A DNA stretch of 64,000 nucleotides from Phaeosaccion multiseriatum (GCA_965112735.1 OZ218952.1:1302001-1366000); one strand, 5' to 3'; positions 480 to 56,201 are shown, counted from the first letter of the stretch. Translations and numbers: made by a program. The notes: generated from the letters alone by a model not told the origin.

Positions 480-3234
480 ATGATGCGCGTACTGGTCCAG
501 AAGAAGATATACCAGTACTCTCCGCCGGCCGAGAGGAGGGGGGAGGAACTTGTTTGCTATCCCTCCCCTCCCCCTCACGATCTCACATCACAGCGGATCT
601 CGAGGGAGAGGGGAATACAAACCGGGAAATGGACAACCAATTGGGAGAATACCTCGCTGATTGTGGAGACGGGAAGTCGAAAGCAGATGGAAGAGAAAGT
701 GCTCCAGCAGCTTTCCACCAACAATGATAACGAAGGTACGCCTACCCAACAGCGGAGTGATGGCAAGAGCAAGGATTCGGAGGGTCACAGCGCAGTTGAT
801 GTGAGAATGGGCAAGGAAAACAAGGGAGAGACAATCTTCAAAGTCCTTGCTCCCATGGAAGAGGGCGGAGGTGGACGATACATCAAGCTTGGTCGACTGG
901 ATGAGACCGGCACCTTTGCTCTCAACGCGGCTCTTGGTGGCGGTGCTGATGCTTATGAGACTGCTTCTGATGGTAGCGGCGAGGATACTGTCAGGGAGAC
1001 GAGCGAGGCCCTCTCGGGAGCCTCAACTGTGGAAGCGGTGATGGAGCGGCTCGGCATGACTGAAGAACTGAAGCTGACTGCAGTGGCAGACGACGACATC
1101 GCTGCTGCCCAGGGTCGGACGGCCGTGAAAGGAGGCATGACAGTGTATGCAAAGACGGACCCCTGCCTACTGCCCAAGAAGGTGACCAAGGACGAGGGGG
1201 GGGACGAGAATGATGACGGTGAAGAGCTTTTTGTGCGTCCGGTGATGAGCATACTGCAAAAGCAGGAGTTTCAGGTCAACATCCTGTTCAAGGGGGAGAG
1301 TCACACGATCAAGACCGATTGCAGGAGCGTGCCGGCCTTAGCCCGTGAAATTGCAAACCTCACCGGCGTGCCTCCTAAGAAGCAGGAGCTGTCGTTCATT
1401 CACTACCCCAGAGAGGAAGAGAAAGAGGGCGAGGTGAGAGCGGAGGCGGACAAGGAAGGAGAATGGCAGTCAACTCCCTCCCTCCCTCAGTCACTCACTC
1501 CCTGCATCCCTCTCTCCTCTCACTCCCTCCCCCCCTCCCTCCTTCCGTGCTACCCATCGTCTATCCCTCCCTCCCTCCCTCCCTCCCTCCCTGCCTCCCT
1601 GCCTCCCCGCCTCCCTGCCCCCCCCCCCTCCCTCCTTCCCTCCCTCTCGCCCTCCCTCCATTCCCACCTACCCACCTCCCTCCCTCCCTTCCTTCCTTCC
1701 TCCCTCCCTCCCTCCCTCCCTCCCTCCCTCCCTCCCTCCCTCCCTCCCTCCCTCCCTCCCTCCCTCCCTCCCTCCCTCCCTCCCTCCCTCCCTCCCTCCC
1801 TCCCTCCCTCCCTCCCTCCCTCCCTCCCTGCCTCCCTGCCTCCCCGCCTCCCTGCCCCCCCCCCCTCCCTCCTTCCCTCCCTCTCTCCCTCCCTCCATTC
1901 CCACCTACCCACCTCCCTCCCTCCCTTCCTTCCTTCCTCCCTCCCTCCCTCCCTCTCTCCCTCCCTCCCTCCCTCCCTCCCTCCCTCCCTCCCTCCCTCC
2001 CCCTCCCTCCCTCCCTCCCTCCCTCCCTCCCTCCCTCCCTCCCTCCCTCCCTCCCTCCCTCCCTCCCTCCCTCCCTCCCTCCCTCCCTCCCTCCCTCCCT
2101 CCCTCCCTCCCTCCCTCCCTCCCTCCCTCCCTCCCTCCCTCCCTCCCTCCCTCCCTCCCTCCCTCCCTCCCTCCCTCCCTCCCTCCCTCCCTCCCTCCCT
2201 CCCTCCCTCCCTCCCTCCCTCCCTCCCTCCCTCCCTCCCTCCCTCCCTCCCTCCCTCCCTCCCTCCCTCCCTCCCTTCCTTCCTTCCTTCCTCACCAGAT
2301 GACTGTTCTGCGCCGGGTAGATAGCCATGACAAGCTTTGTCAGCTCGTGACCCACTGCCCAGGCGATACGGTCCCTACACTCGTACTTCGGGAAGCGGAC
2401 GACACAAAGGGTCGCATTTTAGGATTTCTCATGGAAGTCTTTGTGATGACTATGGCTGGAAAGACCATCTCCGTGTGGGTGGAGCCTTTCGCTACCGTCG
2501 CAGCTTTCAAGAAGGAGATTTATGATTTGGAGGGCATCGCTCCTCATCAACACAGGCTGATCTTTGCGGGGCGTCAGCTGGAGGACAACTGCACGCTGTC
2601 CGAGTACAACGTAACGAAAGAAACCACGGTGCACCTGGTGTTGCGGCTACGTGGAGGCATGTACGTGCCCGCTACGGGGGGTGCACGGATCCCCCGCGGG
2701 TTCACTGCGTGCCATGTGGAAGCCCCTCGCTCTGCTGGCGGCCGCGAGGGCGACGACGTGCTCCTCCCTGTGACGGCATCCACCACGCTCCAGAACCTCT
2801 GCAAAGACGTTCTCCTGCCTGCTGTCCAGGACGCCATTCTTCGGGGACCGCAGCCTGGGTCCAGCCCTGCCGAGGCTGCTCTCGATGCACACCGTGGGGA
2901 AGGGGGCGTGGGAGGTGCGGCTCAGGAGGAGGACGTGGAGAAGAAGAAGGCCGGCAGTGACGCTCCTCCTGCCCCTTCCCCGGCCGCGGAAGCGATGCTG
3001 CAGGAGCTGCTGGCGGGCATGGTGTGGGAATGGCAGACCGACCCGGCCAAGACGCCGGAGCAGCTGCTGGAGAGCAGAGGGCTGGAGGCATCAGAAGGTT
3101 ACTTGGCGCTGCTCAGGGACGCGAGGGCTCGGATCGAAGGTGAGGAGCAAGCCGCTACAGGCTCTTGGTGGGGGGTGGGGTTGGACACTATATACACTTT
3201 TTGTGTTTGGGGAGGGCTTCAGAGACAAGACTGA
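480..3234 (+). CDS. Internal-ubiquitin-domain protein, tandem copy 1 (exons 480-1433, 2299-3234; about 629 aa)
   Basis: Phase-0 intron GAG|GTGAGA...CTCACCAG|ATG at 1434-2298. UBL at 2431-2658 ([12 protein letters not shown]...HLVLRLRGG). The spliced junction aligns with the contiguous sequence of the intronless paralogues at 49790 and 54264. The shared stop is replaced here (GGTGAG instead of GGTGCGTAG). Confidence 0.85.
1530..2290. repeat. (CCCT)n tract in the intron of copy 1, with an internal ~130 bp duplication
   Basis: Directly visible. The compound block at about 1570-1700 recurs at about 1810-1940. Confidence 0.95.
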
Positions 3235-4295
3235 GTCCTTAGTTGATCGGTCGGTTCGTCGTGTGTCGCTCGGATTCTTGAGCCGAACCGCGTTGACACG
3301 CTTCACATCCGTGCCATCAGCCAGCCCCCTGTCCTGCTGCTCGTTTATTTCTCACTTGCTCGCTCTATCGCTCCTCGCTCGCCCTTGCCCTTGTGTTTGT
3401 TTCGGCTGCTTCGCGTCAATGCGGCGTGTGGCAGCAGGGAAAGCCCGCAATGGCCAGCAGGAGCGGGGCGAGAGAACACGCGGACGAGGAGGAGGAAGAG
3501 GGGGAGGACGAGGTGGAGAAGGAGGAGAGCGCGGAAGGTCGTGGCGGCGACGACAAAGCCGCAGGGCCAGACAGACTGCAGCGCGTAGAGAAGCCTGAGC
3601 GGCTCACACCATCGGTGGGCAGCTGCCGGCGGGCGAAGGCGGACGGGGCAGCCAGGGAGCGGCCGAGGAGGTAGGAGGTTAGCACCATCTCTACCACACG
3701 CCCTTGGAAGGGCGCGCATTTGTCTGGACACCATTGGTTGAAGTTGCTAGGCTCGAGGGTTGTGCATGTAAAAGTAGATACTGTAGAATGTGGGGAGAAG
3801 GGGGGGGGGGAGGGAGGGCGAGCAAGCTGAACGAACATGTCAGATCCTTGCTTCGAGCGAGATGGCTCACAAGGGGTTTTTAGAACATGCACTACCCGGG
3901 GAGAGACCCGACCGTAGGACAAGGCCACAAGGCCAGCCAGCAGGAGGAATGTGGTGTGAGGAACCATCCCTCCCAGACTGATCGCTCCACCTTCCGTCAC
4001 CTGTGAGCACGAGAAGCATCTGTAGGCAGGGGGGGTGCTCTTTGAGGGACGAGGCGGGGAAGAGGAAGGAAGGGTCACTGAGCCGCTCATGGCTCAGAAG
4101 GTAATAATCGAGGAGGAGGAAAAGGGTGCCACATCATACCTGAAATTTAAATTCATGGTGGGAAAACTGAAACTGCGCTTGGTGACTGCACTGCGCAGGG
4201 GCAGGAAACGTCCTTCTCTCCCTCCTCAAGCAAGGGAACGCCAGAAGAAATAAACGGAGGGGAGTGGTAGCACGCAAGGGGTCTCCAGTCCAAAG

Positions 4296-6216
4296 ATGAT
4301 GCGCGTACTGGTCCAGAAGGAGACATACCAGTACTCTCCGCCGACCCCCCGTAGTGGGGATGAACTTGTTTGCCACCCTTCCCCCCCCCGCTTTCGTCAG
4401 AGACTCAAGCCAAATGGGGAATGGACAGTCGAGTCGGAGAGTATCTCGCTGATTGTGGAGACGGGAAGTCGAAAGCAGATGGAAGAGAAAGTGCTCCAGC
4501 AGCTTTCCAGCAGCTGCAGCAACAAGAACAAGGGTACGCCTATCCAAAAGCAGAGTGATGGAAAGAGCAAGGATTCGGAAGGTCACAGCGTAGTCGATGT
4601 GAGAATGGGCAAGGAAAACAAGGGAGAGACAATCCTCAAAGTCCATACTCCCATGGAAGAGGGCGGAGGTGGACGATACATCAAGCTTGGTCGACTGGAT
4701 GAGACCGGCACCTTTGCTCTCAACGCGGCTCTTGGTGGCGATGATACCGTCAGGGGGAGGAGCGAGGCCCTATCGGGAGCCTCAACTGTGGAAGCGGTGA
4801 TGGAGCGGCTCGGCATGATTGAAAAACTGAAGCTGACTGCAGTGGCAGACGACGACATCGCTGCCGCCCAGGAGGGGACGGTCGTGAGAGGAGGCATGAC
4901 AGTATATGCGAAGACGGACCACTGCTTACTGCCCAAGGTGACCAAGGACGAGGGGGGCGAGAATGATAACGGCGAAGAGCTTTTTGTGCGTCCGGTGATG
5001 GGCATAATGCAAATGCAGGAGTTTAAGGTTAATGTCCTCTTCAAGGAGGAGAGCCACACGATCAAGACGAATTGCAGGAACTTGTCGGCCTTTGCCTGTG
5101 AGATTGCAAACCTCACCGGCGTGCCTAGGAGGAGCCAGGAGCTGTCTTTCATTCACTGCCGCAGAGAGGAAGGGGAAGAGGGCGAGGTGAGAGCGGAGGC
5201 GGACAAGGAAGGGGAATCGCAATCAACTCCCTCCCTCCCTCCCTCCTTCCGTCCTACCCTCCCTCCCTCCCTCTCTCCCTGTATCCCTCCCTGACCCCCT
5301 CCCTGCCTCCTTCCTTGCCTCCCTCCCTCCCTCCCTCCCTCACCAGATGACTGTTCTGAACTCGGCTAGCTATGACGAGTTTTGTGAACTCGTGATCAAC
5401 TGCCCAGCCGATACGGTCCCTACACTCGTACTTCAGGACAAGGGCGATTTGAAGGTTCAGGACAAGGGCGATTTGAAGAATCGGTACTACGGCCGTGGTA
5501 TGCAAGTCTTTGTGAAGAATCTAACTGGAAAGACCATCACCGTGGATGTGGAGCCATCCACTACCGTCGCAGCTCTCAAGAAGAACATTAAGGCCCACGA
5601 AGGCATCGCTCCTGATCAGCAGAGGCTGATCTTTGCGGGGCGTCAGCTGGAGGACTGGCGCACGCTGTTCGAGTGCGGGATATCGGCGGAAGTAACGATT
5701 CACCTGGTGTTGCGGCTACGTGGAGGCATGTACGTGCCCGCTACGGGGGGTGCACGGATCCCCCGCGGGTTCACCGCGTGCCATGTGGAGGCCCCTCGCT
5801 CTGCTGGCGGCCGCGAGGGCGACGACGTGCTCCTCCCTGTGACGGCGTCCACCACGCTCCAGAACCTCTGCAAAGACATTCTCCTGCCTGCTGTCCAGGA
5901 CGCCATTCTTCGGGGGCCGCAGCCTGGGTCCAGCCCTGCCGAGGCTGCTCTCGATGCACACCGTGGGGAAGGGGGCGTGGGAGGTGCGGCTGAGGAGGAG
6001 GACGTGGAGGAGAAGAAGGCCGGCAGTGACGCTCCTCCTGCCCCTTCCCCGGCCGCGGAAGCGATGCTGCAGGAGCTGCTGGCGGGCATGGTGTGGGAAT
6101 GGCAGACCGACCCGGCCAAGACGCCGGAGCAGCTGCTGGAGAGCAGAGGGCTGGAGGCATCAGAAGGTTACTTGGCGCTGCTCAGGGACGCGAGGGCTCG
6201 GATCGAAGGTGCGTAG
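4296..6216 (+). CDS. Internal-ubiquitin-domain protein, tandem copy 2 (exons 4296-5186, 5347-6216; about 586 aa)
   Basis: Same phase-0 GT-AG intron (160 bp). UBL at 5500-5727, [12 protein letters not shown]...HLVLRLRGG. Confidence 0.88.
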
Positions 6217-7390
6217 CAAGCCGCTACAGGCTCTTGGTGGGGGGTGGGGTTGGACACTCAATACACTTTTTGTGTTTGGGAGGGCTTCAGAGACAAGACT
6301 GAGTCTACACATTTCTCCCTCAGTTGATCGGTTGGTTCGACCTGGCTGTGTCGATCGGATTCTTGAGCTGAACCGCGTTGACACGCTTCACATCCGTGCC
6401 ATCAGCCAGCCCCCTGTCCTGCTGCTCGCTTATTTCTCACTTGCTCGCTCTGTCGCTCCTCGCTCGCCCTTGCCCTCGTGTTTGTTTCGGCTGCTTCGCG
6501 TCAATGCGGCGTGTGGCAGCAGGGAAAGCCCGCAATGGCCAGCAGGAACGGGGCGAGAGAACACGCGGGCGCGGAGGAGGAAGAGGGGGAGGACGAGGTG
6601 GAGGAGGAGAGCGCGGAAGGTCGTGGCGGCGACGACAAAGCCGCAGGGCCAGACAGACTGCAGCGCGTAGAGAAGCCTGAGTGACCATCGGTGGGCAGCT
6701 GCCAGCGGGCGAAGGCGGCCGGGGCAGCCAGGGAGCGGCCGAGGAGGTAGGAGGTCAGCACCATCTCTACCACACGCCCTTGGAAGGGCGCGCATTTGTC
6801 TGGACACCATTGTTGAAGCTGCTAGGCTCGAAGGTTATTTTAATGTAAAAGTAGATATTGTAGAATATGGGGAGAAGGGGGGGGAGGGAGGGCGAGCAAC
6901 AAGCTGAACGAACATGTCAGATCTTTGCTTCGAGCGAGATGGCTCACAAGGGGTTTTTAGAGCATGCACTACCCGGGGAGAGACCAGACCGTAGGACAAG
7001 GCCACAAGGCCAGCCAGCAGGAGGAATGTGGTGTGAGGAACTATCCCTCCCAGACTGATCGCTCCACCTTCCATCATCAGTGAGCACGAGAAGCATCTGT
7101 AGGCAGGGGGGGTGCTCTTCGAGGGACGAGGCGGGGAAGAGGAAGGAAGGGTCACTGAGGAACCGCTCATGGCTCAGAAGGTAGTGGTAGGGAGGAGGAG
7201 AGGAGGAAAAGGGCGCCACATCATGCCACCTTGATATTTAAATTCATGGTGGGAAAACTGAAACTGCGTTTGATGACTGCACTGCGGAGGGGCAGGGAAT
7301 GTCCTTCTCTCCCTCCTTCCTCAATCAAGGGAACGCCCGAAGAAATAAACGGAGGGGAGTGGTAGCACGCAAGGGGTCTCCAGTCCAAAG

Positions 7391-9889
7391 ATGATGCGCA
7401 TACTGGTCCACAAGGAGACATACCAGTACTCTCCGGGCTGGACAGTCGAGTCGGAGAGTATCTCGCTGATTGTGGAGACGGGAAGTCGAAAGCAGATGGA
7501 ACAGAACGTGCTCCAGCAGCTTTCCAGCAGCTGCAGCAACAAGAACAAGGGTACGCCAATCCAAAAGCAGAGTGATGGAAAGAGCAAGGATTCGGAAGGT
7601 CACAGCGTAGTCGATGTGAGAATGGGCAAGGAAAACAAGGGAGAGACAATCCTCAAAGTCCATACTCCCATGGAAGAGGGCGGAGGTGGACGATACATCA
7701 AGCTTGGTCGACTGGATGAGACCGGCACCTTTGCTCTCAACGCGGCTCTTGGTGGCGATGATACCGTCAGGGGGAGGAGCGAGGCCCTCTCTGGAGCCTC
7801 AACTGTGGAAGCGGTGATGAAGCGGCTCGGTAGGTCTCAAGAACTGAAGCTGAGTGCAGTGGCAGACGACGACATCGCTGCCGCCCAGGAGGGGACGGTC
7901 GTGAGAGGAGGCATGACAGTATATGCGAAGACGTGGTGGCGCAAGGTGACCAAGGACGAGGGGGGCGAGAATGATGACGGCGAAGAGCTTTTTGTGCGTC
8001 CGGTGATGGGCATAGTGCAAATGCAGGAGTACAAGGTTAATGTCCTCTTCAAGGAGGAGAGCCACACCATCAAGACAGATTGCAGGAACTTGTCGGCCTT
8101 TGCCCGTGAAATCGCAAACCTCACCGGCGTGCCTAGGAGGAGGCAGGAGCTGTCGTTCATTCACTACCCCAGAGAGGAAGGGAAAGAGGGCGAGGTGAGA
8201 GTGGGGGCGGACAAGGAAGGGGAATCGCAGTCAACTCCCTACCACCCTTAGTCACTCACTCACTGCATCCCTCTCTCCTCCCTCCCTCCCTCTTTCCGTC
8301 CTACCCTCAGTCCCTCCCTTCCTCCCTCCCTGCCTCCCTTCGTCCCTCCCTCCCTCCTTCCGTCCTACCCTCCCTCCCTCCTTCCGTCCTACCCTCCCTC
8401 CCTCCTTCCCTCCGTCCCTCCCTCCCTCCGTCCCTCCGTCCCTCCCTCCCTCCCTCCCTCCCTCCCTCCCTCCCTCCCTCCCTCCCTCCCTCCCTCCCTC
8501 CCTCCCTCCCTCCCTCCCTCCCTCCCTCCCTCCCTCCCTCCCTCCCTCCCTCCCTCCCTCCCTCCCTCCCTCCCTCCCTCCCTCCCTCCCTCCCTCCCTC
8601 CCTCCCTCCCTCCCTCCCTCCCTCCCTCCCTCCCTCCCTCCCTCCCTCCCTCCCTCCCTCCCTCCCTCCCTCCCTCCCTCCCTCCGTCCCTCCGTCCCTC
8701 CGTCCCTCCCTCCCTCCCTCCCTCCCTCCCTCCCTCCCTCCCTCCCTCCCTCCCTCCCTCCCTCCCTCCCTCCCTCCCTCCCTCCCTCCCTCCCTCCCTC
8801 CCTCCCTCCCTCCCTCCCTCCCTCCCTCCCTCCCTCCCTCCCTCCCTCCCTCCCTCCCTCCCTCCCTCCCTCCCTCCCTCCCTCCCTCCCTCCCTCCCTC
8901 CCTCCCTCCCTCCCTCCCTCCCTCCCTCCCTCCCTCCCTCCCTCCCTCCCTCCCTCCCTCCCTCCCTCCCTCCCTCCCTGCCTCCCTCCTCCCTCCCTCC
9001 CTCCCTCCCTCCCTCCCTCCCTTCCTCCCTCCCTCACCAGATGACTGTTCTGAACTTGGATAGCTATGACGAGTTTTGTGAACTCGTGACCAACTGCCCA
9101 ACCGATACGGTCCCTACACTCGTACTTCAGGACAAGGGTGATCTGAAGAATCGGTACTTTGGCCGTAGTATGCAAGTCTTTGTGAAGACTCTAACTGGAA
9201 AGACCATCTCCGTGTGGGTGGAGCCTTCCACTACCGTCGACGGTTTGAAGAAGGAGATTGAGGCCAGCGAAGGCATCCCTCCTGATCAGCAGAGGCTGAT
9301 CTATGCGGGGTGTCATGACTTGGAGGACTGGCGCACGCTGTCCGACTACAGGATACCGATGGAAGGGACGATTCACCTGGTGTTGCGGCTACGTGGAGGC
9401 ATGTACGTGCCCGCTACGGGGGGGGCACGGGTCCCCCCCGGGTACACTGCGTGCTACGTGGAGGCCCCTCGCTCTGCTGGCGGCCGCGAAGGCGATGACG
9501 TGCTCTTCACAGTGACGGCATCCACCACGCTCCAGAACCTCTGCAAAGACGTTCTCCTGCCTGCTGTGCAGGACGCCATTCTTCGGGGGGCGCAGCCTGG
9601 GTCCAGCCCTGCCGAGGCTGCTCTCGATGCACACCGTGGGGAAGGGGGCGTGGGAGGTGCGGCTCAGGAGGAGGACGTGGAGGAGAAGAAGGCCGGCAGT
9701 GACGCTCCTCCTGCCCCTTCCCCGGCCGCGGAAGCGATGCTGCAGGAGCTGCTGGCGGGCATGGTGTGGGAATGGCAGACCGACCCGGCCAAGACGCCGG
9801 AGCAGCTGCTGGAGAGCAGAGGGCTCGAGGCCTCAGAAGATTACTTGGCGCTGCTCAGGGACGCGAGGGCTCGGATCGAAGGTGCGTAG
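7391..9889 (+). CDS. Internal-ubiquitin-domain protein, tandem copy 3 (exons 7391-8194, 9041-9889; about 550 aa)
   Basis: Same intron (846 bp). UBL at 9170-9400 with a 1-aa insertion (AGCHDLED), ending LRLRGG. Confidence 0.88.
8270..9032. repeat. (CCCT)n tract in the intron of copy 3
   Basis: Directly visible. Confidence 0.95.
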
Positions 9890-10867
9890 CAAGCCGCTAC
9901 AGGCTCTTGGTGGGGGGTGGGGTCGGACACTATATACACTTTTTGTGTTTGGGAGGGCTTCAGAGACAAGACTGAGTCTACACATTTCTCCCTCAGTTGA
10001 TCGGTTGGTTCGACCTGGCTGTGTCGATCGGACTCTTGGGCCGAACCGCGTTGGCACGCTTCACATCCGTGCCATCAGCCAGCCCCCTGTCCTGCTGCTC
10101 GCTTATTTCTCACTTGCTCGCTCTGTCGCTCCTCGCTCGCCCTTGCCCTCGTGTTTGTTTCGGCTGCTTCGCGTCAATGCGGCGTGTGGCAGCAGGGAAA
10201 GCCCGCAATGGCCAACAGGAGCGGGGCGAGAGAACACGCGGACGAGGAGGAGGAAGAGGGGGAGGACGAGGTGGAGAAGGAGGAGAGCGCGGAAGGTCGT
10301 GGCGGCGACGACAAAGCCGCAGGGTCAGACAGGCTGCAGCGCGTAGAGAAGGCTGAGCGGCTCACACCATGGGTGGGCAGCTGCCGGCGGGCGAAATCGG
10401 CCGGGGCAGCCAGGGAGCGGCCGAGGAGGTAGGAAGTTAGGACCATCTCTACCACACGCCCTTGGAAGGGCGCGCATTTGTCTGGACACCATTGTTGAAG
10501 CTGCTAGGCTCGAGGGTTGTGCATGTAAAAGTAGATACTGTAGAATATGGGGAGAAGGGGGGGGAGGGAGGGCGAGGAAAAGCTGAACGAACCTGCAAGA
10601 TCTTCGCTTCGAGCGAGATGGCTCACAAGGGGTTTAGAGAATATGCACTACCCGAGGAGAGAACAGACCGTAGGACAAGGCCACGAGGCCAGCCAATAGG
10701 AGGAATGTGATGTGAGGAACCATCCCTCCCAGACTGATCGCTCCACCTTCAGTCATCTGTGAGCACGAGATGCATCTGTAGGCAGGGGGGGTGCTCTTTG
10801 AGGGACGAGGCGGGGAAGAGGAAGAAAGGGTCACTGAGGAACCGCTCATGGCTCAGAAGGTAGTGGT

Positions 10868-11335
10868 TGGGGGGGGGAATAAATATATTGACTTAATAGG
10901 AATCACCTTATAAACTGAAACTGGAAGTGTGCGCGAGTGTTTGTGTGTATGTGTTTATGTGTGCGGGGGGGGGGGTTGTTACTCCCCCTCTGGGTCAGGG
11001 AGAGGGAAGGCAGGACCTGCTCCGCGGTTGAGCCGGCCCAGGAAGGCGCGTTCACGCTCCGAGAGCCACATCTGGTGACTGCAGCTAACGATCCGGCGGA
11101 GTCGGGTCAGGACGTGGCCCTTGATGGTAGAGGAGCCGGTGCGGCCGGTGCGAGAGACGACGTGTTCGGCGAGGGCGTGTAGGCACTAAGAGGGACTGCG
11201 CCTGTGAGCCGAGTCGTCCGTGCGTCTCGATGGCGAAGGTCGTGAGGCGAACTCGCTCTGGGTCGTAGGTGTTGGCGTAGTGCCGCTCCTTGCAGGTCTC
11301 GCGGTGGGCTGCTGCCGCGCCCGGTCTGGTGTCTG
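10868..11335 (-). mobile_element. 5'-truncated CRE/R2-group non-LTR retrotransposon remnant (end of the restriction-like endonuclease domain)
   Basis: Manual minus-strand translation of about 11322-10979: GAAAAHRETCKERHYANTYDPERVRLTTFAIETHGRLGSQAQSLL, frameshift, HALAEHVV...LTRLRRIVSCSHQ. This matches the REL motif (E-x-x-K-x-x-x-Y...FAxETxGRxG). The segment is absent from the other spacers of the array. Confidence 0.7.
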
Positions 11336-11533
11336 GTGTCCAGAGGGAGAAAAAAAAAAAAGGACGTTATCGAAACTGCCACTTCAACTACAATGTAGAT
11401 TCGTGCTTTTTTTGTAACTGCCTGCGCTGGCGAGAAAAACTCTCCTTCTCTCCCTCCTTCCTCAAGAGCAAGAGAACGCCCGAAGAAATAAACAGAGGGG
11501 AGTGGTAGCACGCAAGAGGTCTCCAGTCCAAAG

Positions 11534-14034
11534 ATGATGCGCATACTGGTCCAGAAGGAGACATACCAGTACTCTCCGCCCACCCCCCGGAGTGGGGATG
11601 AACTTGTTTGGTGTCCTCCCCCCCCCCCCTTTCGTCAGAGACTCAAGCCAAATGGGGAATGGGAAGCGTCGGGTCATTGGACAGCCAAGTCGGAGAGTAT
11701 CTCGCTGATTGTGGAGACGGGAAGTCGAAAGCAGATGGAAGAGAACGTGCTCCAGCAGCTTTCCAGCAGCTGCAGCAACAAGAACAAGGATACGCCTATC
11801 CAAGAGCAGAGTGATGGAAAGAGCAAGGATTCGGAAGATCACAGCGCAACTGATGTGAGAATGGGCAAGGAAAACAAGGGAGAGACAATCCTCAAAGTTC
11901 GTACTCCCATGGAAGAGGGCGGTGGAGGTGGACGATACATCAAGCTTGGTCGACTGGATGAGACCGGCACCTTTGCTCTCAACGCGGCTCTTGGTGGCGA
12001 TGATACCGTCAGGGAGAGGAGCGAGGCCCTATCGGGAGCCTCAACTGTGGAAGCGGTGATGGAGCGGCTCGGTATGACTGAAGAACTAAAGCTGACAGCA
12101 GACATCTCTGGCAATGTCGGCGACAGGTTTACGTCTGTCCTCAGGAGCGAGGCCATGACAGTATATGCGAAGACGGACCTCTGCCTACTGCCCAAGGTGA
12201 CCAAGGACGAGGGGGGCGAGAATGATGACGGCGAAGAGCTTTTTGTGCGTCCAGTGATGGGCATAGTGCAAATGCAGGAGTATAAGGTTAATGTCCTCTT
12301 CAAGGAGGAGAGCCACACCATCAAGACGGATTGCAGGAACTTGTCGTCCTTTGCCCGTGAAATTGCAAACCTCACCGGCGTGCCTAGGAGGAGGCAGGAG
12401 CTGTCGTTCATTCACTACCCCAGAGAGGAAGGGAAAGAGGGCGAGGTGAGAGCGGAGGCGGACAAGGAAGGAGAATCGCAGTCAACTCCCTCCCTCCCTC
12501 CCTCCCTCCCTCCCTCCCTCCCTCCCTCCCTCCCTCCCTCCCTCCCTCCCTCCCTCCCTCCCTCCCTCCCTCCCTCCCTCCCTCCCTCCCTCCCTCCCTC
12601 CCTCCCTCCCTCCCTCCCTCCCTCCCTCCCTCCCTCCCTCCCTCCCTCCCTCCCTCCCTCCCTCCCTCCCTCCCTCCCTCCCTCCCTCCCTCCCTCCCTC
12701 CCTCCCTCCCTCCCTCCCTCCCTCCCTCCCTCCCTCCCTCCCTCCCTCCCTCCCTCCCTCCCTCCCTCCCTCCCTCCTCCCTGCCTCCCTCCCTCCCTCC
12801 ATCCATCCATGCATCCATCCATCCATCCATCCATCCATCCATGCATCCATCCATCCATCCATCCATCCATCCATCCATCCATCCATCCATCCATCCATCC
12901 ATCCATCCATCCATCCATCCATCCATCCATCCATCCATCCCTCCCTCCCTCCCTCCATCCATCCATCCATCCATCCATCCATCCATCCATCCATCCATCC
13001 ATCCATCCATCCATCCATCCATCCATCCATCCATCCATCCATCCATCCATCCATCCATCCATCCATCCATCCCTCCCTCCTTCCCTCCATCTCTCCCTCC
13101 CCCCTTCCCTCCCTCTCTCCCTTTATCCCTCCCTGACCCCCTCCCTGCCTCCTTCCTTGCCTCCCTCCCTTCCTCCCTCCCTCACCAGATGACTGTTCTG
13201 AACTCGGATAGCTATGACGAGTTTTGTGAACTTGTGATCAACTGCCCAGCCGATACGGTCCCTACACTCGTACTTCAGGACAAAGGTGATCTGAAGAATC
13301 GGTTCTTTGGCCGTAGCATGCAAGTCTTTGTGAGGCATCTAACCGGAAAGACCATCTCCGTGTGGGTGGACCCTTCCACTACCGTCGACGGTTTGAAGAA
13401 GGAGATTCGGGATTTGGACGGCATCCCTCCTGATGAACAGAGGCTGATCTATGCGGGGTGTCAGCTGGAGGACTGGCGCACGCTGTCCGAGTACAGGATA
13501 GCGGCGGAAGGAACGATTCACCTGGTGTTGCGGCTACGTGGAGGCATGTACGTGCCCGCTACGGGGGGTGCACGGATCCCCCGCGGGTACACTGCGTGCT
13601 GTGTGGAAGCCCCTCGCTCTGCTGGCGGCCGCGAGGGCGACGACGTGCTCCTGCCCGTGAAGGGGTCAATCAGTCTCCAGAGCCTCTGCAGAGACGTTCT
13701 CCTGCCTGCTGTCCAGGACGCCATTCTTCGGGGGCCGCAGCCTGGGTCCAGCCCTGCCGAGGCTGCTCTCGATGCACACCGTGGGGAAGGGGGCGTGGGA
13801 GGTGCGGCTCAGGAGGAGGACGTGGAGGAGAAGAAGGCCGGCAGTGACGCTCCTCCTGCCCCTTCCCCGGCCGCGGAAGCGATGCTGCAGGAGCTGCTGG
13901 CGGGCATGGTGTGGGAATGGCAGACCGACCCGGCCAAGACGCCGGAGCAGCTGCTGGAGAGCAGAGGGCTGGAGGCCTCAGAAGGTTACTTGGCGCTGCT
14001 CAGGGACACGAGGGCTCGGATCGAAGGTGCGTAG
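11534..14034 (+). CDS. Internal-ubiquitin-domain protein, tandem copy 4 (exons 11534-12445, 13189-14034; about 585 aa)
   Basis: Same intron (743 bp). UBL at 13318-13545, ending LRLRGG. Confidence 0.88.
12487..13180. repeat. Compound (CCCT)n/(CCAT)n tract in the intron of copy 4
   Basis: CCCT to about 12798, CCAT at about 12799-13070, then degenerate CCCT. Confidence 0.95.
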
Positions 14035-15051
14035 CAAGCCGCTACAGGCTCTTGGTGGGGGGTGGGGTCGGACACTATATACACTTTTTGTGTTTGGGAG
14101 GGCTTCAGAGACAAGACTGAGTCTACACATTTCTCCCTCAGTTGATCGGTTGGTTCGACCTGGCTGTGTCGATCGGACTCTTGGGCCGAACCAAGTTGGC
14201 ACGCTTCACATCCGTGCCATCAGCCAGCTCCCTGTCCTGCTGCTCGCTTATTTCTCATTTGCTCGCTCTGTCGCTCCTCGCTCGCCCTTGCCCTCGTGTT
14301 TATTTCGGCTGCTTCGCGTCAATGCGGCGTGTGGCAGCAGGGAAAGCCCGCAATGGCCAGCAGGAGCGGGGCGAGAGAGCACGTGGACGAGGAGGAGGAA
14401 GAGGGGGAGGACGAGGTGGAGAAGGAGGAGAGCGCGGAAGGTCGTGGCGGCGACGACAAAGCCGCAGGGCCAGACAGGCCGCAGCGCGTAGAGAAGCCTG
14501 AGCCACACCATCGGTGGGCAGCTGCCGGCGGGCGAGGCGGCCGGGGCAGCCAGGGAGCGGCCGAGGAGGTAGGAGGTTAGCACCATCTCTACCACACACC
14601 CTTGGAAGGGCGCGCATTTGTCTGGACACCAGATCCTGTGTTGTACCAACATGCATTTTGGTTTTTCGGCCACCTTTGTTGAAGTTGCTAGGCTCGAGGG
14701 TTGTGCATATAAAAGTAGATACTGTAGAATATGGGGAGAAGGGGGGGAGGGAGGGCGAGCAACAAGCTGAACGAACATGTAAGATCCTTGCTTCGAGCGA
14801 GATGGCTCACAAGGGGTTTAGAGAATATGCACTACCCGAGGAGAGACCAGCTCGTAGGACAAGGCCACAAGGCCAGCCAATAGGAGGAATGTGATATGAG
14901 GAACCATCTCTCCCAGACTGATCGCTCCACCTTCCATCATCAGTGAACACGAGATGCATCTGTAGGCAGGGGGGGTGCTCTTTGAGGGACGAGGCGGGGA
15001 AGAGGAAGGAAGGGTCACTGAGGAACCGCTCATGGCTCAGAAGGTAGTGGT

Positions 15052-15547
15052 TCGGCCCCATGCACGCCTAGCGGTTTTGCTCTAGGCCGCTAGGCCGCTA
15101 GGCCGCTCGGCCTTCGGCCGATCTAGGCCTAGGCCGGCGGCCTCCGGCCGCTCTAGGCCGCTCACTTTTCAGTCCTAGGCGGCCTATATAGCCCGCCTCT
15201 AGGCAGCCTCCCAGTGACCGTGGGCGCGTGCGTGGTGCCGCCCAGCCAGTGGGTAGCAGCACACCTGTAGGTCTGCACTCCTCGTAGGGCCAGCGAGGCG
15301 GAAGAGACAACACGAACCAAGTCTACTCCTCACTTCCAATCCCATGCAATGAAACTGACTACTCTTTGCACTCTGGGCACTCCCACCGTCCCCCTAGTTG
15401 GCTGGCGTCTGCCCTAGGCCGCGCGGGCCTCCGGCCCGCCTAGGCCGCCTAGGCGGTGGCATATAAATAGGCCGAGGGCCTACGGCCCTCGCTAGGCGGG
15501 GCAATTTTCCCAAATAGGCCTAGGCCGCTAGGCGTGCATGGGGCCGA
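15052..15547. mobile_element. Non-autonomous DNA transposon (MITE), 496 bp, 23-bp TIRs, 7-bp TSD
   Basis: Perfect TIR TCGGCCCCATGCACGCCTAGCGG at both ends. TSD TAGTGGT at 15045-15051 and 15548-15554. The empty site AAGGTAGTGGTAGGG is present in the paralogous spacers at about 7180 and 18990. Subterminal CCTAGG/GGCCGCTAGG motifs are present. Confidence 0.93.
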
Positions 15548-15755
15548 TAGTGGTAGGGAGGAGGAGAGGAGGAAAAGGGCGCCACATCATGCCACCTTAA
15601 ATTTAAATTCATGGTGGGAAAACTGAAACTGCGTTTGGTGACTGCACTGCGGAGGGGCGGGGAATGTCCTTCTCTCCCTCCTTCCTCAAGCAAGGGAACG
15701 CCCGAAGAAATAAACGGAGGGGAGTGGTAGCACGCAAGGGGTCTCCAGTCCAAAG

Positions 15756-18032
15756 ATGGTGCGCATACTGGTCCAGAAGGAGACATACCAGTACTCTCCG
15801 CCGACCCCCCGGAGTGGGGATGAACTTGTTTGCTGTCCTTCCCCCCCCTCCTTTCGTCAGAGACTCAAGCCAAATGGGGAATGGGAAGCGTCGGGTCATT
15901 GGACAGCCAAGTCGGAGAGTATCTCGCTGATTGTGGAGACGGGAAGTCGAAAGCAGATGGAAGAGAAAGTGCTCCAGCAGCTTTCCAGCAGCTGCAGCAA
16001 CAAGAACAAGGATATCCAAAAGCACGGTGATGGAAAGAGCAAGGACTCGGAAGGTCACAGCGCAGTTGATGTGAGAAGGGGGAAGGAAAACAAGGGAGAG
16101 ACAATCCTCAAAGTCCGTACTCCCATGGAAGAGGGCGGTGGAGGTGGACGATACATCAAGCTTGGTCGACTGGATGAGACCGGCACCTTTGCTCTCAACG
16201 CGGCTCTTGGTGGCGATGATACCGTCAGGGGGAGGAGCGAGGCCCTCTCTGGAGCCTCAACTGTGGAAGCGGTGATGAAGCGGCTCGGTAGGACTCAAGA
16301 ACTGAAGCTGAGTGCAGTGGCAGACGACGACATCGCTGCCGCCCAGGAGGGGACGGTCGTGAGAGGAGGCATGACAGTATATGCGAAGACGTGGTGGCCC
16401 AAGGTGACCAAGGACGAGGGGGGCGAGAATGATGACGGCGAAGAGCTTTTTGTGCGTCCGGTGATGGGCATAATGCAAATGCAGGAGTATAAGGTTAATG
16501 TCCTCTTCAAGGAGGAGAGCCACACCATCAAGACAGATTGCAGGAACTTGTCGGCCTTTGCCCGTGAAATTGCAAACCTCACCGGCGTGCCTAGGAGGAG
16601 GCAGGAGCTGTCGTTCATTCACTACCCCAGAGAGGAAGGGAAAGAGGGCGAGGTGAGAGTGGGGGCGGACAAGGAAGGGGAATCGCAGTCAACTCCCTAC
16701 CACCCTTAGTCACTCACTCACTGCATCCCTCTCTCCTCCCTCCCTCCCTCTTTCCGTCCTACCCTCAGTCCCTCCCTTCCTCCCTCCCTGCCTCCCTTCG
16801 TCCCTCCCTCCCTCCTTCCGTCCTACCCTCCCTCCCTCCTTCCCTCCGTCCCTCCCTCCCTCCCTCCCTCCCTCCCTCCCTCCCTCCCTCCCTCCCTCCC
16901 TCCCTCCCTCCCTCCCTCCCTCCCTCCCTCCCTCCCTCCCTCCCTCCCTCCCTCCCTCCCTCCCTCCCTCCCTCCCTCCCTCCCTCCCTCCCTCCCTCCC
17001 TCCCTCCCTCCCTCCCTCCCTCCCTCCCTCCCTCCCTCCCTCCCTCTCTCCCTCCCTCCCTCCCTCCCTCCCTCCCTCCTTCCCTCCCTCTCTCCCTCCC
17101 TCCCTCCTTCCCTGACTCCCTCCCTGCCTCCCTCCCTGCCTCCCTCCCTCCCTCCCTCCCTCCCTCCCTCCCTTCCTCACCAGATGACTGTTCTGAACTT
17201 GGATAGCTATGACGAGTTTTGTGAACTCGTGACCAACTGCCCAGCCGATACGGTCCCTACACTCCTACTTCAGGACAAGGGTGATCTGAAGAATCGGTAC
17301 TTTGGCCGTAGTATGCAAGTCTTTGTGAAGACTATAACTGGAAAGACCATCTCCGTGTGGGTGGAGCCTTCCACTACCGTCGCAGCTTTCAAGAAGGAGA
17401 TTGAGGCCAGCGTAGGCATGCCTCCTGATCAGCAGAGGCTGATCTATGCGGGGTGTCATGACTTGGAGGACTGGCGCACGCTGTCCGACTACAGGATACC
17501 GATGGGAGGAACGATTCACCTGGTGTTGTGGCTACGTGGAGGCATGTACGTGCCCGCTACGGGGGGTGCACGGATCCCCCCCGGGTACACTGCGTGCTGT
17601 GTGGAAGCCCCTCGCTCTGCTGGCGGCCGCGAGGGCGACGACGTGCTCCTGCCCGTGAAGGGGTCAATCAGTCTCCAGAACCTCTGCAAAGACGTTCTCC
17701 TGCCTGCTGTCCAGGACGCCATTCTTCGGGGGCCGCAGCCTGGGTCCAGCCCTGCCGAGGCTGCTCTCGATGCACACCGTGGGGAAGGGGGCGTGGGAGG
17801 TGCGGCTGAGGAGGAGGACGTGGAGGAGAAGAAGGCCGGCAGTGACGCTCCTCCTGCCCCTTCACCGGCCGCGGAAGCGATGCTGCAGGAGCTGCTGGCG
17901 GGCATGGTGTGGGAATGGCAGACCGACCCGGCCAAGACGCCGGAGCAGCTGCTGGAGAGCAGAGGGCTGGAGGCCTCAGAAGGTTACTTGGCGCTGCTCA
18001 GGGACGCGAGGGCTCGGATCGAAGGTGCGTAG
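15756..18032 (+). CDS. Internal-ubiquitin-domain protein, tandem copy 5 (exons 15756-16652, 17184-18032; about 581 aa)
   Basis: Same intron (531 bp). UBL at 17313-17543, ending LWLRGG. Confidence 0.88.
16735..17176. repeat. (CCCT)n tract in the intron of copy 5
   Basis: Directly visible. Confidence 0.95.
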
Positions 18033-19199
18033 CAAGCCGCTACAGGCTATTGGTGGGGGGTGGGGTTGGACACTATATACACTTTTTGTGTTTGGGGAGG
18101 GCTTCAGAGACAAGACTGAGTCCGTAGTGTTTTGATCGGTCGGTTCGACTTGGCTGTGTCGATCGGATTCTTGAGCCGAACCGCGTTGACACGCTTCACA
18201 TCCGTGCCATCAGCCAGCCCCCTGTCCTGCTGCTCGTTTATTTCTCACTTGCTCGCTCTGTCGCTCCTCGCTCGCCCTTGCCCTCGTGTTTGTTTCGGCT
18301 GCTTCGCGTCAATGCGGCGTGTGGCAGCAGGGAAAGCCCGCAATGGCCAGCAGGAACGGGGCGAGAGAACACGCGGACGAGGAGGAGGAAGAGGGGGAGG
18401 ACGAGGTGGAGAAGGAGGAGAGCGCGGAAGGTCGTGGCGGCGACGACAAAGCCGCAGGGCCAGACAGGCCGCAGCGCGTAGAGAAGCCTGAGTGACCATC
18501 GGTGGGCAGCTGCCGGCGGGCGAAGGCGGCCGGGGCCGCCAGGGAGCGGCCGAGGAGGTAGGAGGTCAGCACCATCTCTACCACACGCCCTTGGAAGGGC
18601 GCGCATTTGTCTGGACACCATTGTTGAAGTTGCTAGGCTCGAAGGTTGTGCATGTAAAAGTAGATACTGTAGAATATGGGGAGAAGGGGGGGGAGGGAGG
18701 GCGAGCAACAAGCTGAACGAACATGTAAGATCCTTGCTTCGAGCGAGATGGCTCACAAGGGGTTTAGAGAATATGCACTACCCGAGGAGAGAGCAGACCG
18801 TAGGACAAGGCCACGAGGCCAGCCAATAGGAGGAATGTGATATGAGGAACCATCTCTCCCAGACTGATCGCTCCACCTTCCATCATCAGTGAACACGAGA
18901 TGCATCTGTAGGCAGGGGGGGTGCTCTTTGAGGGACGAGGCGGGGAAGAGGAAGGAAGGGTCACTGAGGAACCGCTCATGGCTCAGAAGGTAGTGGTAGG
19001 GAGGAGGAGAGGAGGAAAAGGGTGCCACATCATGCCACCTTAAATTTAAATTCATGGTGGGAAAACTGAAACTGCGTTTGGTGACTGCACTGCGGAGGGG
19101 GCGGGGAATGTCCTCCTCTCCCTCCTTCCTCAAGCAAGGGAACGCCCGAAGAAATAAACGGAGGGGAGTGGTAGCACTCAAGGGGTCTCCAGTCCAAAG

Positions 19200-21220
19200 A
19201 TGATGCGCATACTGGTCCAGAAGGAGACATACCAGTACTCTCCGCCGACCCCCCCCGTTTGCTATCCTTCCCCCCCCCGCTTTCGTCGGAGACTCAAGCC
19301 AAATGGGGAATGGAAAGCGTCGGGTCATTGGACAGTCGAGTCGGAGAGTATCTCGCTGATTGTGGAGACGGGAAGTCGAAAGCAGATGGAAGAGAAAGTG
19401 CTCCAGCAGCTTTCCAGCAGCTGCAGCAACAAGAACAAGGATACGCCTATCCAAAAGCAGAGTGATGGAAAGAGCAAGGATTCGGAAGGTCACAGCGCAG
19501 TTGATGTGAGAATGGGCAAGGAAAACAAGGGAGAGACAATCCTCAAAGTTCGTACTCCCATGGAAGAGGGCGGTGGAGGTGGACGATACAGATACATCAA
19601 GCTTGGTCGACTGGATGAGACCGGCACCTTTGCTCTCAACGCGGCTCTTGGTGGCGATGATACTGCTGCTGATGATGGAACAGACGATACCGTGAGCGTT
19701 TCGAACCAGATTGCTGATGCTTATGAGACTGCTTCTGATGGTAGCGGCGAGGATACTGTGGCCCTCTCGGGAGCCTCAACTGTGGAAGCGGTGATGGAGC
19801 GGCTCGGTATGACTGAAGAACTGAAGCTGACTGCAGTGGCAGACGACGACATCGCTGCCGCCCAGGAGGGGACGGTCGTGAGAGGAGGCATGACAGTATA
19901 TGCGAAGACGGACCCCTGGCTACTGCCCAAGGTGACCAAGGACGATGGGGGCGAGAATTATGACGGCGAAGAGCTTTTTGTGCGTCCGGTGATGGGCATA
20001 ATGCAAATGCAGGAGTTTAAGGTTAATGTCCTCTTCAAAGAGGAGAGCCACACCATCAAGACAGATTGCAGGAACTTGTCGGCCTTTGCCCGTGAAATTG
20101 CAAACCTCACCAGCGTGCCTAGGAGGAGGCAGGAGCTGTCGTTCATTCACTACCGCAGAGAGGAAGGGAAAGAGGGCGAGGTGAGAGCGGAGACGGACAA
20201 GGAAGGAGAATCGCAATCAACTCCCTACCACCCTTAGTCACTCACTCACTGCATCCCTCTCTCCTCCCTCCCTCCCTCTTTCCGTCCTACCCTCAGTCCC
20301 TCCCTCCCTCCCTCCCTCCCTGACCCCCTCCCTCCCTGCCTCGCTCCCTCCGTCCTTCCTTCCTCCCTCACCAGATGACTGTTCTGAACTCGGATAGCTA
20401 TGACGAGTTTTGTGAACTTGTGATCAACTGCCCAGCCGATACGGTCCCTACACTCGTACTTCAGGACAAGGGTGATCTGACGTGTCGGTACTTTGGCCGT
20501 AGCATGCAAGTCTTTGTGAAGACTATAGCTGGAAAGATCATCTCCGTGTGGGTGGAGCCTTCCACTACCGTCGCAGCTTTCAAGAAGGAGATTTATGATT
20601 TGGAGGGCATCGCTCCTGATCAGCAGAGGCTGATCTATGCGGGGCGTCAGCTGGAGGACTGGCGCACGCTGTCCGACTACAGGATAGCGGCGGATGACAC
20701 AATGCACTTGATCCTCCCGCTACGTGGAGGCATGTACAAGCCCGCTACGGGGGGTGCACGGATCCCCCCCGGGTACACTGCGTGCTACGTGGAGGCCCCT
20801 CGCTCTGCTGGCGGCCGCGAGGGCGACGACGTGCTCCTGCCCGTGAAGGGGTCAATGAGTCTCCAGAGCCTCTGCAGAGACATTCTCCTGCCCGCGGTCC
20901 AGCAGTCTATTCGGCGTGGGCCGCAGTCTGAGGCCGGTCCTGCTAGGGCGGCTCTCGACGCAAGCAGCGTGGAAGAGAAGATGGAGGGGAAGGACAGTGA
21001 TGAGGCTCTGGAGGGGAAGGACAGTGATGAGGCTCCTCCTGCCCCTTCCCCGGCCGCGGAAGCGATGCTGCAGGAGCTGCTGTCGAGCATGGTGCAGGAA
21101 GGGCAGCGCGGCCCGGCCAAGACGCCGGAGCAGCTGCTGGAGAGCAGAGGGCTGGAGGCTTCGGATCAGAACTTGATGCTGCTCAGGGACGTGATGGCAC
21201 AGGAGGATCCAGGCGCATAG
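19200..21220 (+). CDS. Internal-ubiquitin-domain protein, tandem copy 6 (exons 19200-20180, 20375-21220; about 608 aa)
   Basis: Same intron (194 bp). UBL at 20504-20731, ending LPLRGG. Its C-terminal module is of the type found in the 54264 paralogue. Confidence 0.88.
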
Positions 21221-39421: not shown

Positions 39422-39462
<41 letters not shown>

Positions 39463-39797: not shown

Positions 39798-39867
<70 letters not shown>

Positions 39868-40361: not shown

Positions 40362-40402
<41 letters not shown>

Positions 40403-44329: not shown

Positions 44330-44365
<36 letters not shown>

Positions 44366-55898: not shown

Positions 55899-56201
55899 AA
55901 TGGCAGTCATGACTTTGGGTCCGGTCTCGGGGGAAGTGGGCAGAGAGGATGGTTGTTTGATGTGTCTTGGTCCATTTTTCCTCTTCGTTACCGTGCCGTT
56001 TTACTTTGCACACAACATTACTTTGTAAAAAACCCAAAACCTAAAACCCCTGTTCTTCCTCTCGGCAACATCCACAGCTCCACGAGTTGGTGCTCCGGTT
56101 AGCCGTAGAGCTGAAATTGGAAAATTGTTGGGGGCGGTGAGCCAAGGGTGAGCGCTGCGGGTTAACTTTAGCTTTAACTCTCTGCTCTGGACGGGGAGAT
56201 C

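Follow-up and report, generated by a model that had tools for sequence, protein, structure and literature searches.

Ubiquitin is among the most conserved of eukaryotic proteins, and ubiquitin-like (UBL) domains are normally under purifying selection. The ubiquitin fold is known inside larger polypeptides in several forms: ISG15 and FAT10 are tandem UBL modifiers, ISG15 ending in LRLRGG and being made with a short C-terminal extension; Rad23, Dsk2/ubiquilin, parkin and BAG6 have an integral UBL domain; and the polyproteins of pestiviruses (bovine viral diarrhoea virus, BVDV) contain an inserted host ubiquitin, near-identical to that of the host, with a demonstrated cleavage site. Here we analyse a window of 64,000 nucleotides (nt) of Phaeosaccion multiseriatum (GCA_965112735.1 OZ218952.1:1302001-1366000; genome of 67 Mb in 22 contigs, G+C ~60%), which holds a tandem array of six genes, each predicted to encode a large protein with an internal, diverged ubiquitin-family domain, termed UBL2 below, that passes through Gly-Gly-Met into a tail. 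The protein sequence of UBL2 appears, at borderline significance, to change faster than its silent sites, unlike the neighbouring exon 1 and tail, with the core of the domain and the patch around I44 being kept.

The array proteins share features with each of these systems and depart from each. ISG15 and FAT10 are among the structural matches of UBL2 in the fold search, and the likeness lies in the two beta-grasps in tandem (the first of them only predicted here), in the second one ending with LRLRGG plus extra residues, and in the fast divergence from ubiquitin. By contrast, here the extension has 160 amino acids (aa) with a helical bundle, a further 200-aa N-terminal region is present, and Gly-Gly is absent in two paralogues outside the array, c8 and c9. 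Because ~160 residues including a three-helix bundle follow it, the Gly-Gly is not near the C-terminus as it is in the ISG15/FAT10 type, and we know of no dedicated activating (E1), conjugating (E2) or ligating (E3) enzyme for the array proteins. Rad23, Dsk2, parkin and BAG6 also appear among the fold matches, and as in these proteins the UBL domain lies within a larger polypeptide with the I44 patch kept, c8 and c9 being alike also in having no terminal Gly-Gly; unlike them, the array copies keep LRLRGG-Met and are far nearer to ubiquitin, and no UBA or known partner domain was detected in the array proteins. As in canonical ubiquitin precursors, the Gly-Gly of the array (absent in c8 and c9) is directly followed by a non-Pro residue, Met, but the moiety is neither near-identical to the genome's ubiquitin nor N-terminal. 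As with the BVDV ubiquitin, the moiety is internal, with Gly-Gly and then the next protein, and could be a module for cleavage by host proteases; unlike that case, the sequence here is divergent and any cleavage would be a prediction.

The general kind, internal algal ubiquitin fusions, is known: many ubiquitin fusions, N-terminal, C-terminal or internal and some with hypothetical proteins, were described in two other algae (Sibbald et al. 2019, PMC6332867). As in those fusions, we have here a ubiquitin moiety ending in Gly-Gly inside a larger unannotatable protein of a secondary-plastid alga, and automatic gene calling easily overlooks moieties of this kind. Unlike those fusions, the present domains have 62-70% identity to ubiquitin, occur in nine clustered paralogues, vary at 41 of 76 positions among the six array copies and change faster than their fusion partners; a clustered, diversifying version is not described in that paper. 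UbKEKS, from the UBBP4 'pseudogene', is reported to be a free, conjugated 76-aa ubiquitin with four residue differences including K33E (Dubois et al. 2020, PMC7066184). The likeness is that surface residues including a lysine position are altered and that the signalling may differ from that of ubiquitin; the difference is that the present domains deviate from ubiquitin at 23-29 positions and lie inside a large protein.

The array and its ubiquitin-family domains

The array occupies positions 480-21220 of the + strand, with six repeat units of 3.0-4.2 kb each arranged head-to-tail. Each unit consists of an open reading frame (ORF1), a CT-rich microsatellite of variable length and a second frame (ORF2), with ORF2 encoding in order a leader of 43-51 residues, the ubiquitin-family domain, LRLRGG plus Met, and a tail of ~160 residues. 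Three extra paralogues, c7, c8 and c9, are inverted (- strand) and lie at 46.7-55.9 kb of the window, giving nine paralogues in total, all within one 55-kb locus; no family copy was found elsewhere in a search of the whole genome. The coordinates are given in Table 1.

The six array domains are ubiquitin-family domains with the beta-grasp fold. They match PF00240 with E from 1e-19 to 4e-27 and 67-94 bits (cut-off 25.4), with c8 and c9 scoring 75 and 62 bits, and their alignment to ubiquitin, as printed by HMMER, is unambiguous. Of 76 residues, 47-53 are identical to ubiquitin in the array domains, compared with 36-38 in those of c8 and c9. In the AlphaFold2 (AF2) models UBL2 has a predicted local distance difference test (pLDDT) value of 67-90, and VIA-align superposes 73-79 residues on ubiquitin chains with Z 15-16 and a root-mean-square deviation of 0.7-1.8 A. 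The span 2431-20731 begins with the first residue of the copy 1 domain and ends with the last residue of the copy 6 domain.

The residue assignments that had been made in the initial annotation are borne out by this alignment. In copies 1-6, K48 is R, R, C/H, C, C/H and R, where the 'C' of copies 3 and 5 is alignment-dependent because these copies have a one-residue insertion, CHD for KQ; K33 is L, H, S, L, S and L; K29 is E, N, E, E, E and E; and K63 is K, A, M, A, M and A. K11, K27, I44, H68 and G75-G76 are retained in all six, and R72 is replaced by W in copy 5 and by P in copy 6. Moreover, K6 has become M in copy 1 and R in copy 4 and is kept in the other four, and A28K is gained in every copy. 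There is no variation at R42, I44, G47 and H68, only conservative substitutions occur at L8 and V70, and the whole of L71-R72-L73-R74-G75-G76 is intact in copies 1-4. Likewise, the Met after Gly-Gly and the PATGG that then follows, both reported earlier, are seen in all six.

The genome's own ubiquitin is identical to the array domains at 47-54 of 76 residues. A recent capture from the polyubiquitin genes was considered and is ruled out by the nt identity of 68% and the third-codon-position identity of ~0.5. Since each UBL2 resembles ubiquitin more closely than the array resembles c8 or c9, the sequences suggest that the array, c8 and c9 diverged independently from a ubiquitin-like ancestor. 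Note also that the genome has two copies of another divergent ubiquitin-like ORF (G000:C11:1994600-1995300 and 1954000-1954800 (-)), ending in HMLVRLLGGV and a stop, which is not canonical ubiquitin and not obviously NEDD8.

Variation of UBL2 and its lysines

Exons were analysed separately throughout. The pairwise ratio of nonsynonymous to synonymous change (dN/dS, omega) in UBL2 is 1.04-4.5, above 1 in all 15 pairs, whereas in the tail of copies 1-5 it is 0.24-0.72 in 9 of 10 pairs, the remaining pair (copies 4 and 5) giving 1.38 from only five differences. A count-based omega, with the minimum number of changes per codon column divided into nonsynonymous (N) and synonymous (S) ones, gives for UBL2 of the six copies N 57, S 10 and omega 1.8 (p for omega > 1 of 0.05), and for copies 1-5 N 51, S 7 and omega 2.3 (p 0.018). 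The excess resides outside the core, with the 57 non-core positions having N 50, S 7 and omega 2.2 (p 0.027) vs N 7, S 3 and omega 0.8 (p 0.76) at the 19 core positions. With the codon models of IQ-TREE, omega of UBL2 is 1.83 (GY+F3X4) or 2.11 (MG+F3X4), vs 0.62 in the tail and 0.65 in exon 1; for UBL2 a value of 0.63 is rejected (twice the log-likelihood difference, 2dlnL, 13.2, p 0.0003), and exon 1 and tail reject omega = 1 (2dlnL 18.0 and 15.0). These estimates point, with borderline significance, to protein change that outpaces the silent sites in UBL2, unlike in the neighbouring exon 1 and tail. Variation is concentrated on the exposed side of helix 1 (20-34), in the 53-65 loop, and at 6-9 and 48-49, with K6, K29, K33, K48 and K63 falling in these regions, and the changes in the core are conservative.

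Compared codon by codon, the copies differ by multi-nucleotide cassettes that are shared in differing combinations. At codons 24-26, copies 1, 2, 5 and 6 stand together vs 3 and 4, while at codons 31-33 copy 1 goes with 6 and copy 3 with 5, copies 2 and 4 each being alone; the trees of UBL2, tail and exon 1 disagree. The tail is homogenised over 30-40 kb, with a sharp boundary at VPPGFTAC: c8 and copy 2 have 45-79% nt identity in the UBL and 95-100% in the tail, and c9 and copy 6 show the same pattern for the initial 180 nt of the tail. In copy 6, the first tail segment (20765-20950) is 95-100% nt-identical to c9 (54490-54668) and ~73% to copy 5. That the copy 6 tail matches c9 and the c8 tail matches copies 1-5 indicates that gene conversion links specific array members with specific inverted copies.

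It had been proposed that the domains lost the chain-forming lysines in particular. Each array copy retains 2-3 of the 7 ubiquitin lysines, and 3-5 lysines are present per domain, including K11 and K27 (6/6), K6 (4/6) and the new K28. In one-sided Fisher tests per copy, p is 0.05-0.25 for lysines vs all other positions and 0.02-0.15 for surface lysines vs the 51 other surface positions, the split into surface and core following the known ubiquitin core. Tests by column are fairer, because the copies are not independent, and for lysine vs non-lysine columns they give p 0.40 for change in at least one array copy and 0.13 for change in all six. The lysine loss is thus not clearly greater than the overall divergence: targeted loss is not supported (p 0.02-0.25 per copy, 0.13-0.40 by column), and a loss no greater than expected from overall divergence, which is essentially what is found, cannot be rejected. 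As for the Cys at position 48, it arises in copies 3-5 from Arg48 by one CpG transition (CGT>TGT), as Trp72 in copy 5 does by CGG>TGG, and we take Cys48 to be common to the three copies by common descent or gene conversion.

The junction after Gly-Gly

The junction reads LRLRGG-M in copies 1-4, LWLRGG-M in copy 5 and LPLRGG-M in copy 6, and after Gly-Gly it is modelled as unstructured (pLDDT <50). From H68 across LRLRGG-M the codons of copies 1-5 are nucleotide-identical except for R72W, and in copy 6 a few codons of this block differ, including that of R72P. Since the LRLRGG-M-PATGG block of copies 1-5 has zero synonymous differences, the six-fold conservation amounts to a single observation and shows no selection; the uniformity of the block is ascribed to gene conversion or to recent common ancestry. 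In the paralogues outside the array, the junction is TIGAG-F in c8, LRLRTC-C in c9 and RWRLGG-S in c7, and the second di-glycine is AG in c8 and EG in c9; c8 has no Gly-Gly, yet its ORF of 545 aa is intact. The earlier statement that the LRGG-Met processing site is kept thus holds in so far as the site is present in all six array copies, but selection on it does not follow from an identical DNA block, and Gly-Gly is lost in c8 and c9.

Copies 1-4 have R42, I44, G47, H68, V70 and L71-G76 intact, and with a junction that is modelled as unstructured they are plausible targets for cleavage after Gly-Gly by general deubiquitinases. From the established role of R72, the changes R72W and R72P are expected to weaken recognition by E1 and deubiquitinases.

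Gene model and predicted architecture

Each array copy very probably is a two-exon gene with a predicted product of 550-629 aa. A phase-0 donor GGCGAG/GTGAGAG and an acceptor CTCACCAG/ATG (the slash marks the splice site) are common to all six units, with the distance between them ranging from 160 to 865 nt. The intronless c8 and c9, which sit 30-35 kb from the array, have the ORF1-like and ORF2-like parts in one ORF each, colinear and in the same order, and it is because these two encode both halves in single ORFs that ORF1 and ORF2 are considered to form one protein. UBL2 would then be preceded by the 43-51 residues of ORF2 and by a predicted upstream exon of 268-327 aa, and with UBL2 being internal any conjugated form would bear ~310-370 extra N-terminal residues.

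The end of exon 1 aligns in register to ubiquitin residues 10-46 (hhalign E 2.5e-4, probability 43%), the ORF2 leader contributes a helix and the last strand to the same region, and in the AF2 model of c8 this region has the topology beta-beta-alpha-beta...alpha-beta with pLDDT ~73. On these grounds a degenerate first beta-grasp, UBL1, is predicted, split by the predicted intron and in tandem with UBL2. The predicted order of the product is the N-terminal region, UBL1, UBL2, a disordered linker, a beta-beta-alpha element, an acidic low-complexity stretch and a three-helix bundle at the tail end (pLDDT 78-86).

The predicted introns are filled by a CT-rich microsatellite of the CCCTCCCT type, which translates as PSLPPSLP when read through, and that of copy 4 also has a CATC/CATCCATC-type repeat, reading HPSIHPSI. 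The exon-1 frame of copies 1, 2 and 4 has no stop within the repeat, and spurious long ORFs result. In exon 1 of copy 4, ~50 nt are swapped in frame for unrelated sequence with no frameshift, and at 3139-3234 copy 1 has GAG at the position of the TAG stop of the others, with an extension of 29 residues. The stop region resembles a splice donor in all copies (GAAG/GTGCGT, or GTGAGG in copy 1).

Searches for relatives and other features of the window

A word-based search of 5.8 billion proteins (lengths 218-695 aa) found no relatives of the tail, and scans of viral contigs and metagenome contigs likewise gave none. A profile search of 1.84 billion representatives gave 0 matches for the N-terminal part, and a profile search of the tail against the PDB gave only matches with E above 3; the N-terminal part, too, matches no PDB sequence. 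In Pfam at E up to 10, nothing meaningful, and no UBA or RING, was obtained for the tail and N-terminal parts, ubiquitin-type families being the only ones in the protein. In the fold searches (VIA wide, ESM Atlas) the matches were filled by the ubiquitin domain, so that effectively this domain alone was covered, and a protein-atlas feature search with the tail and N-terminal part gave weak leads (0.81-0.87) to ubiquitin-family clusters, which are leads only. Judged by these sequence comparisons, the family is restricted to this species in the collections searched. The tail was also considered as a decayed third ubiquitin repeat; its VLLPV... segment falls on ubiquitin 13-52 in a sensible register, without significance (hhalign E 0.22, probability 0.3%).

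Between the array and the inverted paralogues lie four long ORFs of 1361, 887, 1047 and 763 aa without Pfam match, at 22225-26310 (-), 27901-30564 (-), 38222-41365 (+) and 42682-44973 (-). An RWP-RK domain occurs in one ORF (E 9e-10) and a partial DUF1823 in another (E 9e-13), at 44595-45326 (-) and 59087-59710 (-).

Table 1. Features of the array and of the inverted paralogues, in positions of the 64,000-nt window
Feature	Position	Strand	Basis and remarks
Copy 1 exon 1 (predicted)	480..1433	+	318 aa; ORF list; phase-0 donor GAG/GTGAGAG; colinear with intronless c8, c9
Copy 1 intron (predicted)	1434..2298	+	holds CT-rich microsatellite; donor and acceptor CACCAG/ATG kept in 6/6 copies
Copy 1 exon 2 (predicted)	2299..3234	+	311 aa; usual stop lost, +29 aa
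Copy 1 UBL2, end LRLRGG	2431..2658	+	PF00240 E 1.6e-20; 47/76 identical to ubiquitin
Copy 2 exon 1 (predicted)	4296..5186	+	297 aa
Copy 2 intron (predicted)	5187..5346	+	conserved splice sites
Copy 2 exon 2 (predicted)	5347..6216	+	289 aa; AF2 model m690f22e6ace5
Copy 2 UBL2, end LRLRGG	5500..5727	+	PF00240 E 4e-27; 51/76 identical; ubiquitin fold Z 16
Copy 3 exon 1 (predicted)	7391..8194	+	268 aa
Copy 3 intron (predicted)	8195..9040	+	conserved splice sites
Copy 3 exon 2 (predicted)	9041..9889	+	282 aa
Copy 3 UBL2, end LRLRGG	9170..9400	+	77 aa; CHD replaces KQ at 48-49
Copy 4 exon 1 (predicted)	11534..12445	+	304 aa; in-frame unrelated patch of ~50 nt near 12100-12150
Copy 4 intron (predicted)	12446..13188	+	conserved splice sites
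Copy 4 exon 2 (predicted)	13189..14034	+	281 aa
Copy 4 UBL2 (K6R, C48), end LRLRGG	13318..13545	+	alignment to ubiquitin
Copy 5 exon 1 (predicted)	15756..16652	+	299 aa
Copy 5 intron (predicted)	16653..17183	+	conserved splice sites
Copy 5 exon 2 (predicted)	17184..18032	+	282 aa
Copy 5 UBL2, end LWLRGG (R72W, CGG>TGG)	17313..17543	+	alignment to ubiquitin
Copy 6 exon 1 (predicted)	19200..20180	+	327 aa
Copy 6 intron (predicted)	20181..20374	+	194 nt; genomic contigs span it unspliced
Copy 6 exon 2 (predicted)	20375..21220	+	281 aa; first tail part matches c9, not copies 1-5
Copy 6 UBL2, end LPLRGG (R72P, V70I)	20504..20731	+	alignment to ubiquitin
c7, decayed paralogue	46695..47801	-	tblastn: in-frame stops, frame changes, first UBL strand deleted; LRWRLGGS retained
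c8, intronless paralogue, 545 aa	49790..51427	-	tail 95-100% nt-identical to copies 1-5 from VPPGFTAC on; AF2 model m11a2cb529728
c8 UBL2, end LLTIGAG, without Gly-Gly	50291..50518	-	K48 and K33 kept
c9, intronless paralogue	54206..55910	-	ORF 54264-55910 of 548 aa; last tail helices in another frame (54206-54337), hence frameshift
c9 UBL2, end LRLRTC, without Gly-Gly	54726..54953	-	alignment to ubiquitin

Discussion

The reading that we prefer, with a probability of roughly 0.45, is that of an orphan multi-beta-grasp family in which UBL2 presents a variable surface around a conserved I44 patch, with the lysine loss being collateral and LRLRGG-Met being an inherited relic that is possibly cleavable. 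Based on this reading, UBL2 would be the second of two tandem beta-grasp domains in a species-restricted protein of 550-629 aa, with its core and the I44/R42/H68 recognition patch kept and its other faces diversified by substitution and by the shuffling of short blocks between copies, while from H68 onward gene conversion would keep the sequence uniform. The protein may act as an adaptor or bait, in which partners docking on the I44 patch would be shown a ubiquitin-like surface that is variable. Since the variable faces are where most ubiquitin lysines sit, the replacement of lysines would be a by-product. The LRLRGG-Met would come from a ubiquitin or polyubiquitin ancestor and be carried within the homogenised block; general deubiquitinases may cut copies 1-4, with the family not being dependent on the cleavage. 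As regards the earlier idea of recognisable but poorly extendable mimics, the recognition residues R42, I44, G47 and H68 are indeed kept, whereas poor extendability sits badly with the 3-5 lysines present per domain, the gained K28 among them.

Several observations weigh against the preferred reading. The test of UBL2 against omega 1 is borderline (2dlnL 3.8, p 0.05), and the selection analysis places six recombining sequences on single trees with the codon bias partly modelled. A whole-gene omega of ~0.6, the pseudogene c7, the frameshifted c9, the lost stop of copy 1 and the patch of copy 4 fit weak constraint. No ubiquitin-pathway enzyme was found in the 64-kb window, the annotated domains being only RWP-RK and DUF1823, and no nearby partner or ubiquitin-binding domain was found. 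The surface lysines are kept at 2 of 6 vs 65-76% identity at the other surface positions, and the excess lysine loss is a trend that could reach significance with more data. Finally, the public sequencing runs, four from one sample, are all genomic, their nature as DNA following from the contigs that span the predicted intron of copy 6 unspliced.

It is possible, though doubtful, that the array encodes modifier precursors, in which deubiquitinases would cut after LRLRGG to give a tandem-UBL protein conjugated by E1/E2/E3 in the manner of ISG15/FAT10, plus a free 160-aa tail starting with MYVPATGG; the loss of K48, K63, K29 and K33 would then limit chain building on the attached moiety, which is near to the 'chain cap' idea of the initial annotation. 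Eukaryotic cells normally cleave linear ubiquitin fusions, except where G76 is followed by Pro, and here Met follows Gly-Gly at a junction modelled as disordered. Consistent with such a precursor are also the full L71-G76 together with R42, I44, H68 and V70 in copies 1-4, the tandem beta-grasp layout like that of ISG15 and FAT10, and the many ubiquitin fusions, some internal, that algae encode (PMC6332867). What speaks against this is that Gly-Gly is gone in c8 and c9 with the c8 ORF intact, that the sole in-motif changes in the array fall on the E1-critical R72, that zero synonymous variation is available to reveal constraint on the motif, that K6, K11 and K27 are kept and K28 gained, that a 'propeptide' of 160 aa far exceeds those of known modifiers, and that no dedicated E1 or E2 was found nearby in the window. 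A young, weakly constrained or decaying cluster, a recent orphan tandem duplication under near-neutral drift, is in our judgement unlikely; the excess in UBL2 would then arise from relaxed constraint, conversion from diverged donors and CpG decay. The signs of weak constraint listed above, namely c7, c9, the stop of copy 1 and the patch of copy 4, fit this reading, as do the omega of 0.6 even in the better-conserved parts, a UBL2 omega differing from 1 with only p 0.05, Cys48 and Trp72 as CpG transitions, the lack of relatives in the collections searched and the genomic-only public runs. Yet both ORFs are open and the splice sites intact in all six array copies, the UBL2 core has omega 0.8 with conservative changes only vs 2.2 in the rest, I44, R42, G47 and H68 are invariant, exon 1 and tail reject omega = 1 (as given above), and UBL2 is still diverse beside a tail homogenised across 30-40 kb.

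We regard as improbable a diversity-generating ubiquitin-like system, with varied surface, kept I44 patch and LRLRGG and a uniform C-terminal module, whose products would serve to decoy or trap the enzymes that viruses or selfish elements direct at ubiquitin, or as alternative ISG15-like modifiers released after Gly-Gly. More improbable still is that each repeat unit holds two separate genes, with ORF2 from its own ATG encoding the 43-residue leader, the ubiquitin domain and the tail. It is true that the putative acceptor is immediately followed by the ATG of ORF2, that ORF1 of copies 3, 5 and 6 meets a stop of its own shortly beyond the putative donor, and that the public runs are all genomic. 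But in c8 and c9 a single ORF covers the two parts, in unchanged order, two genes would divide the predicted UBL1 beta-grasp between them, and each of the six copies has a conserved donor and acceptor in phase, at a distance that varies from 160 to 865 nt.

Conclusions

We propose that the array of P. multiseriatum encodes, with the probability given above, an orphan family in which UBL2 is a variable surface around a conserved I44 patch. A surface changing above the silent rate, with a fixed core and I44 patch and a homogenised neighbour, would be an unusual regime for the ubiquitin fold. If the variation is adaptive, it would point to a role of an algal ubiquitin mimic in conflict or recognition, and the copies would offer natural 'ubiquitin variants' with altered lysines and residue 72 for biochemistry. 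If it is not adaptive, the locus would be a clean example of the rapid decay of ubiquitin once freed from its role.

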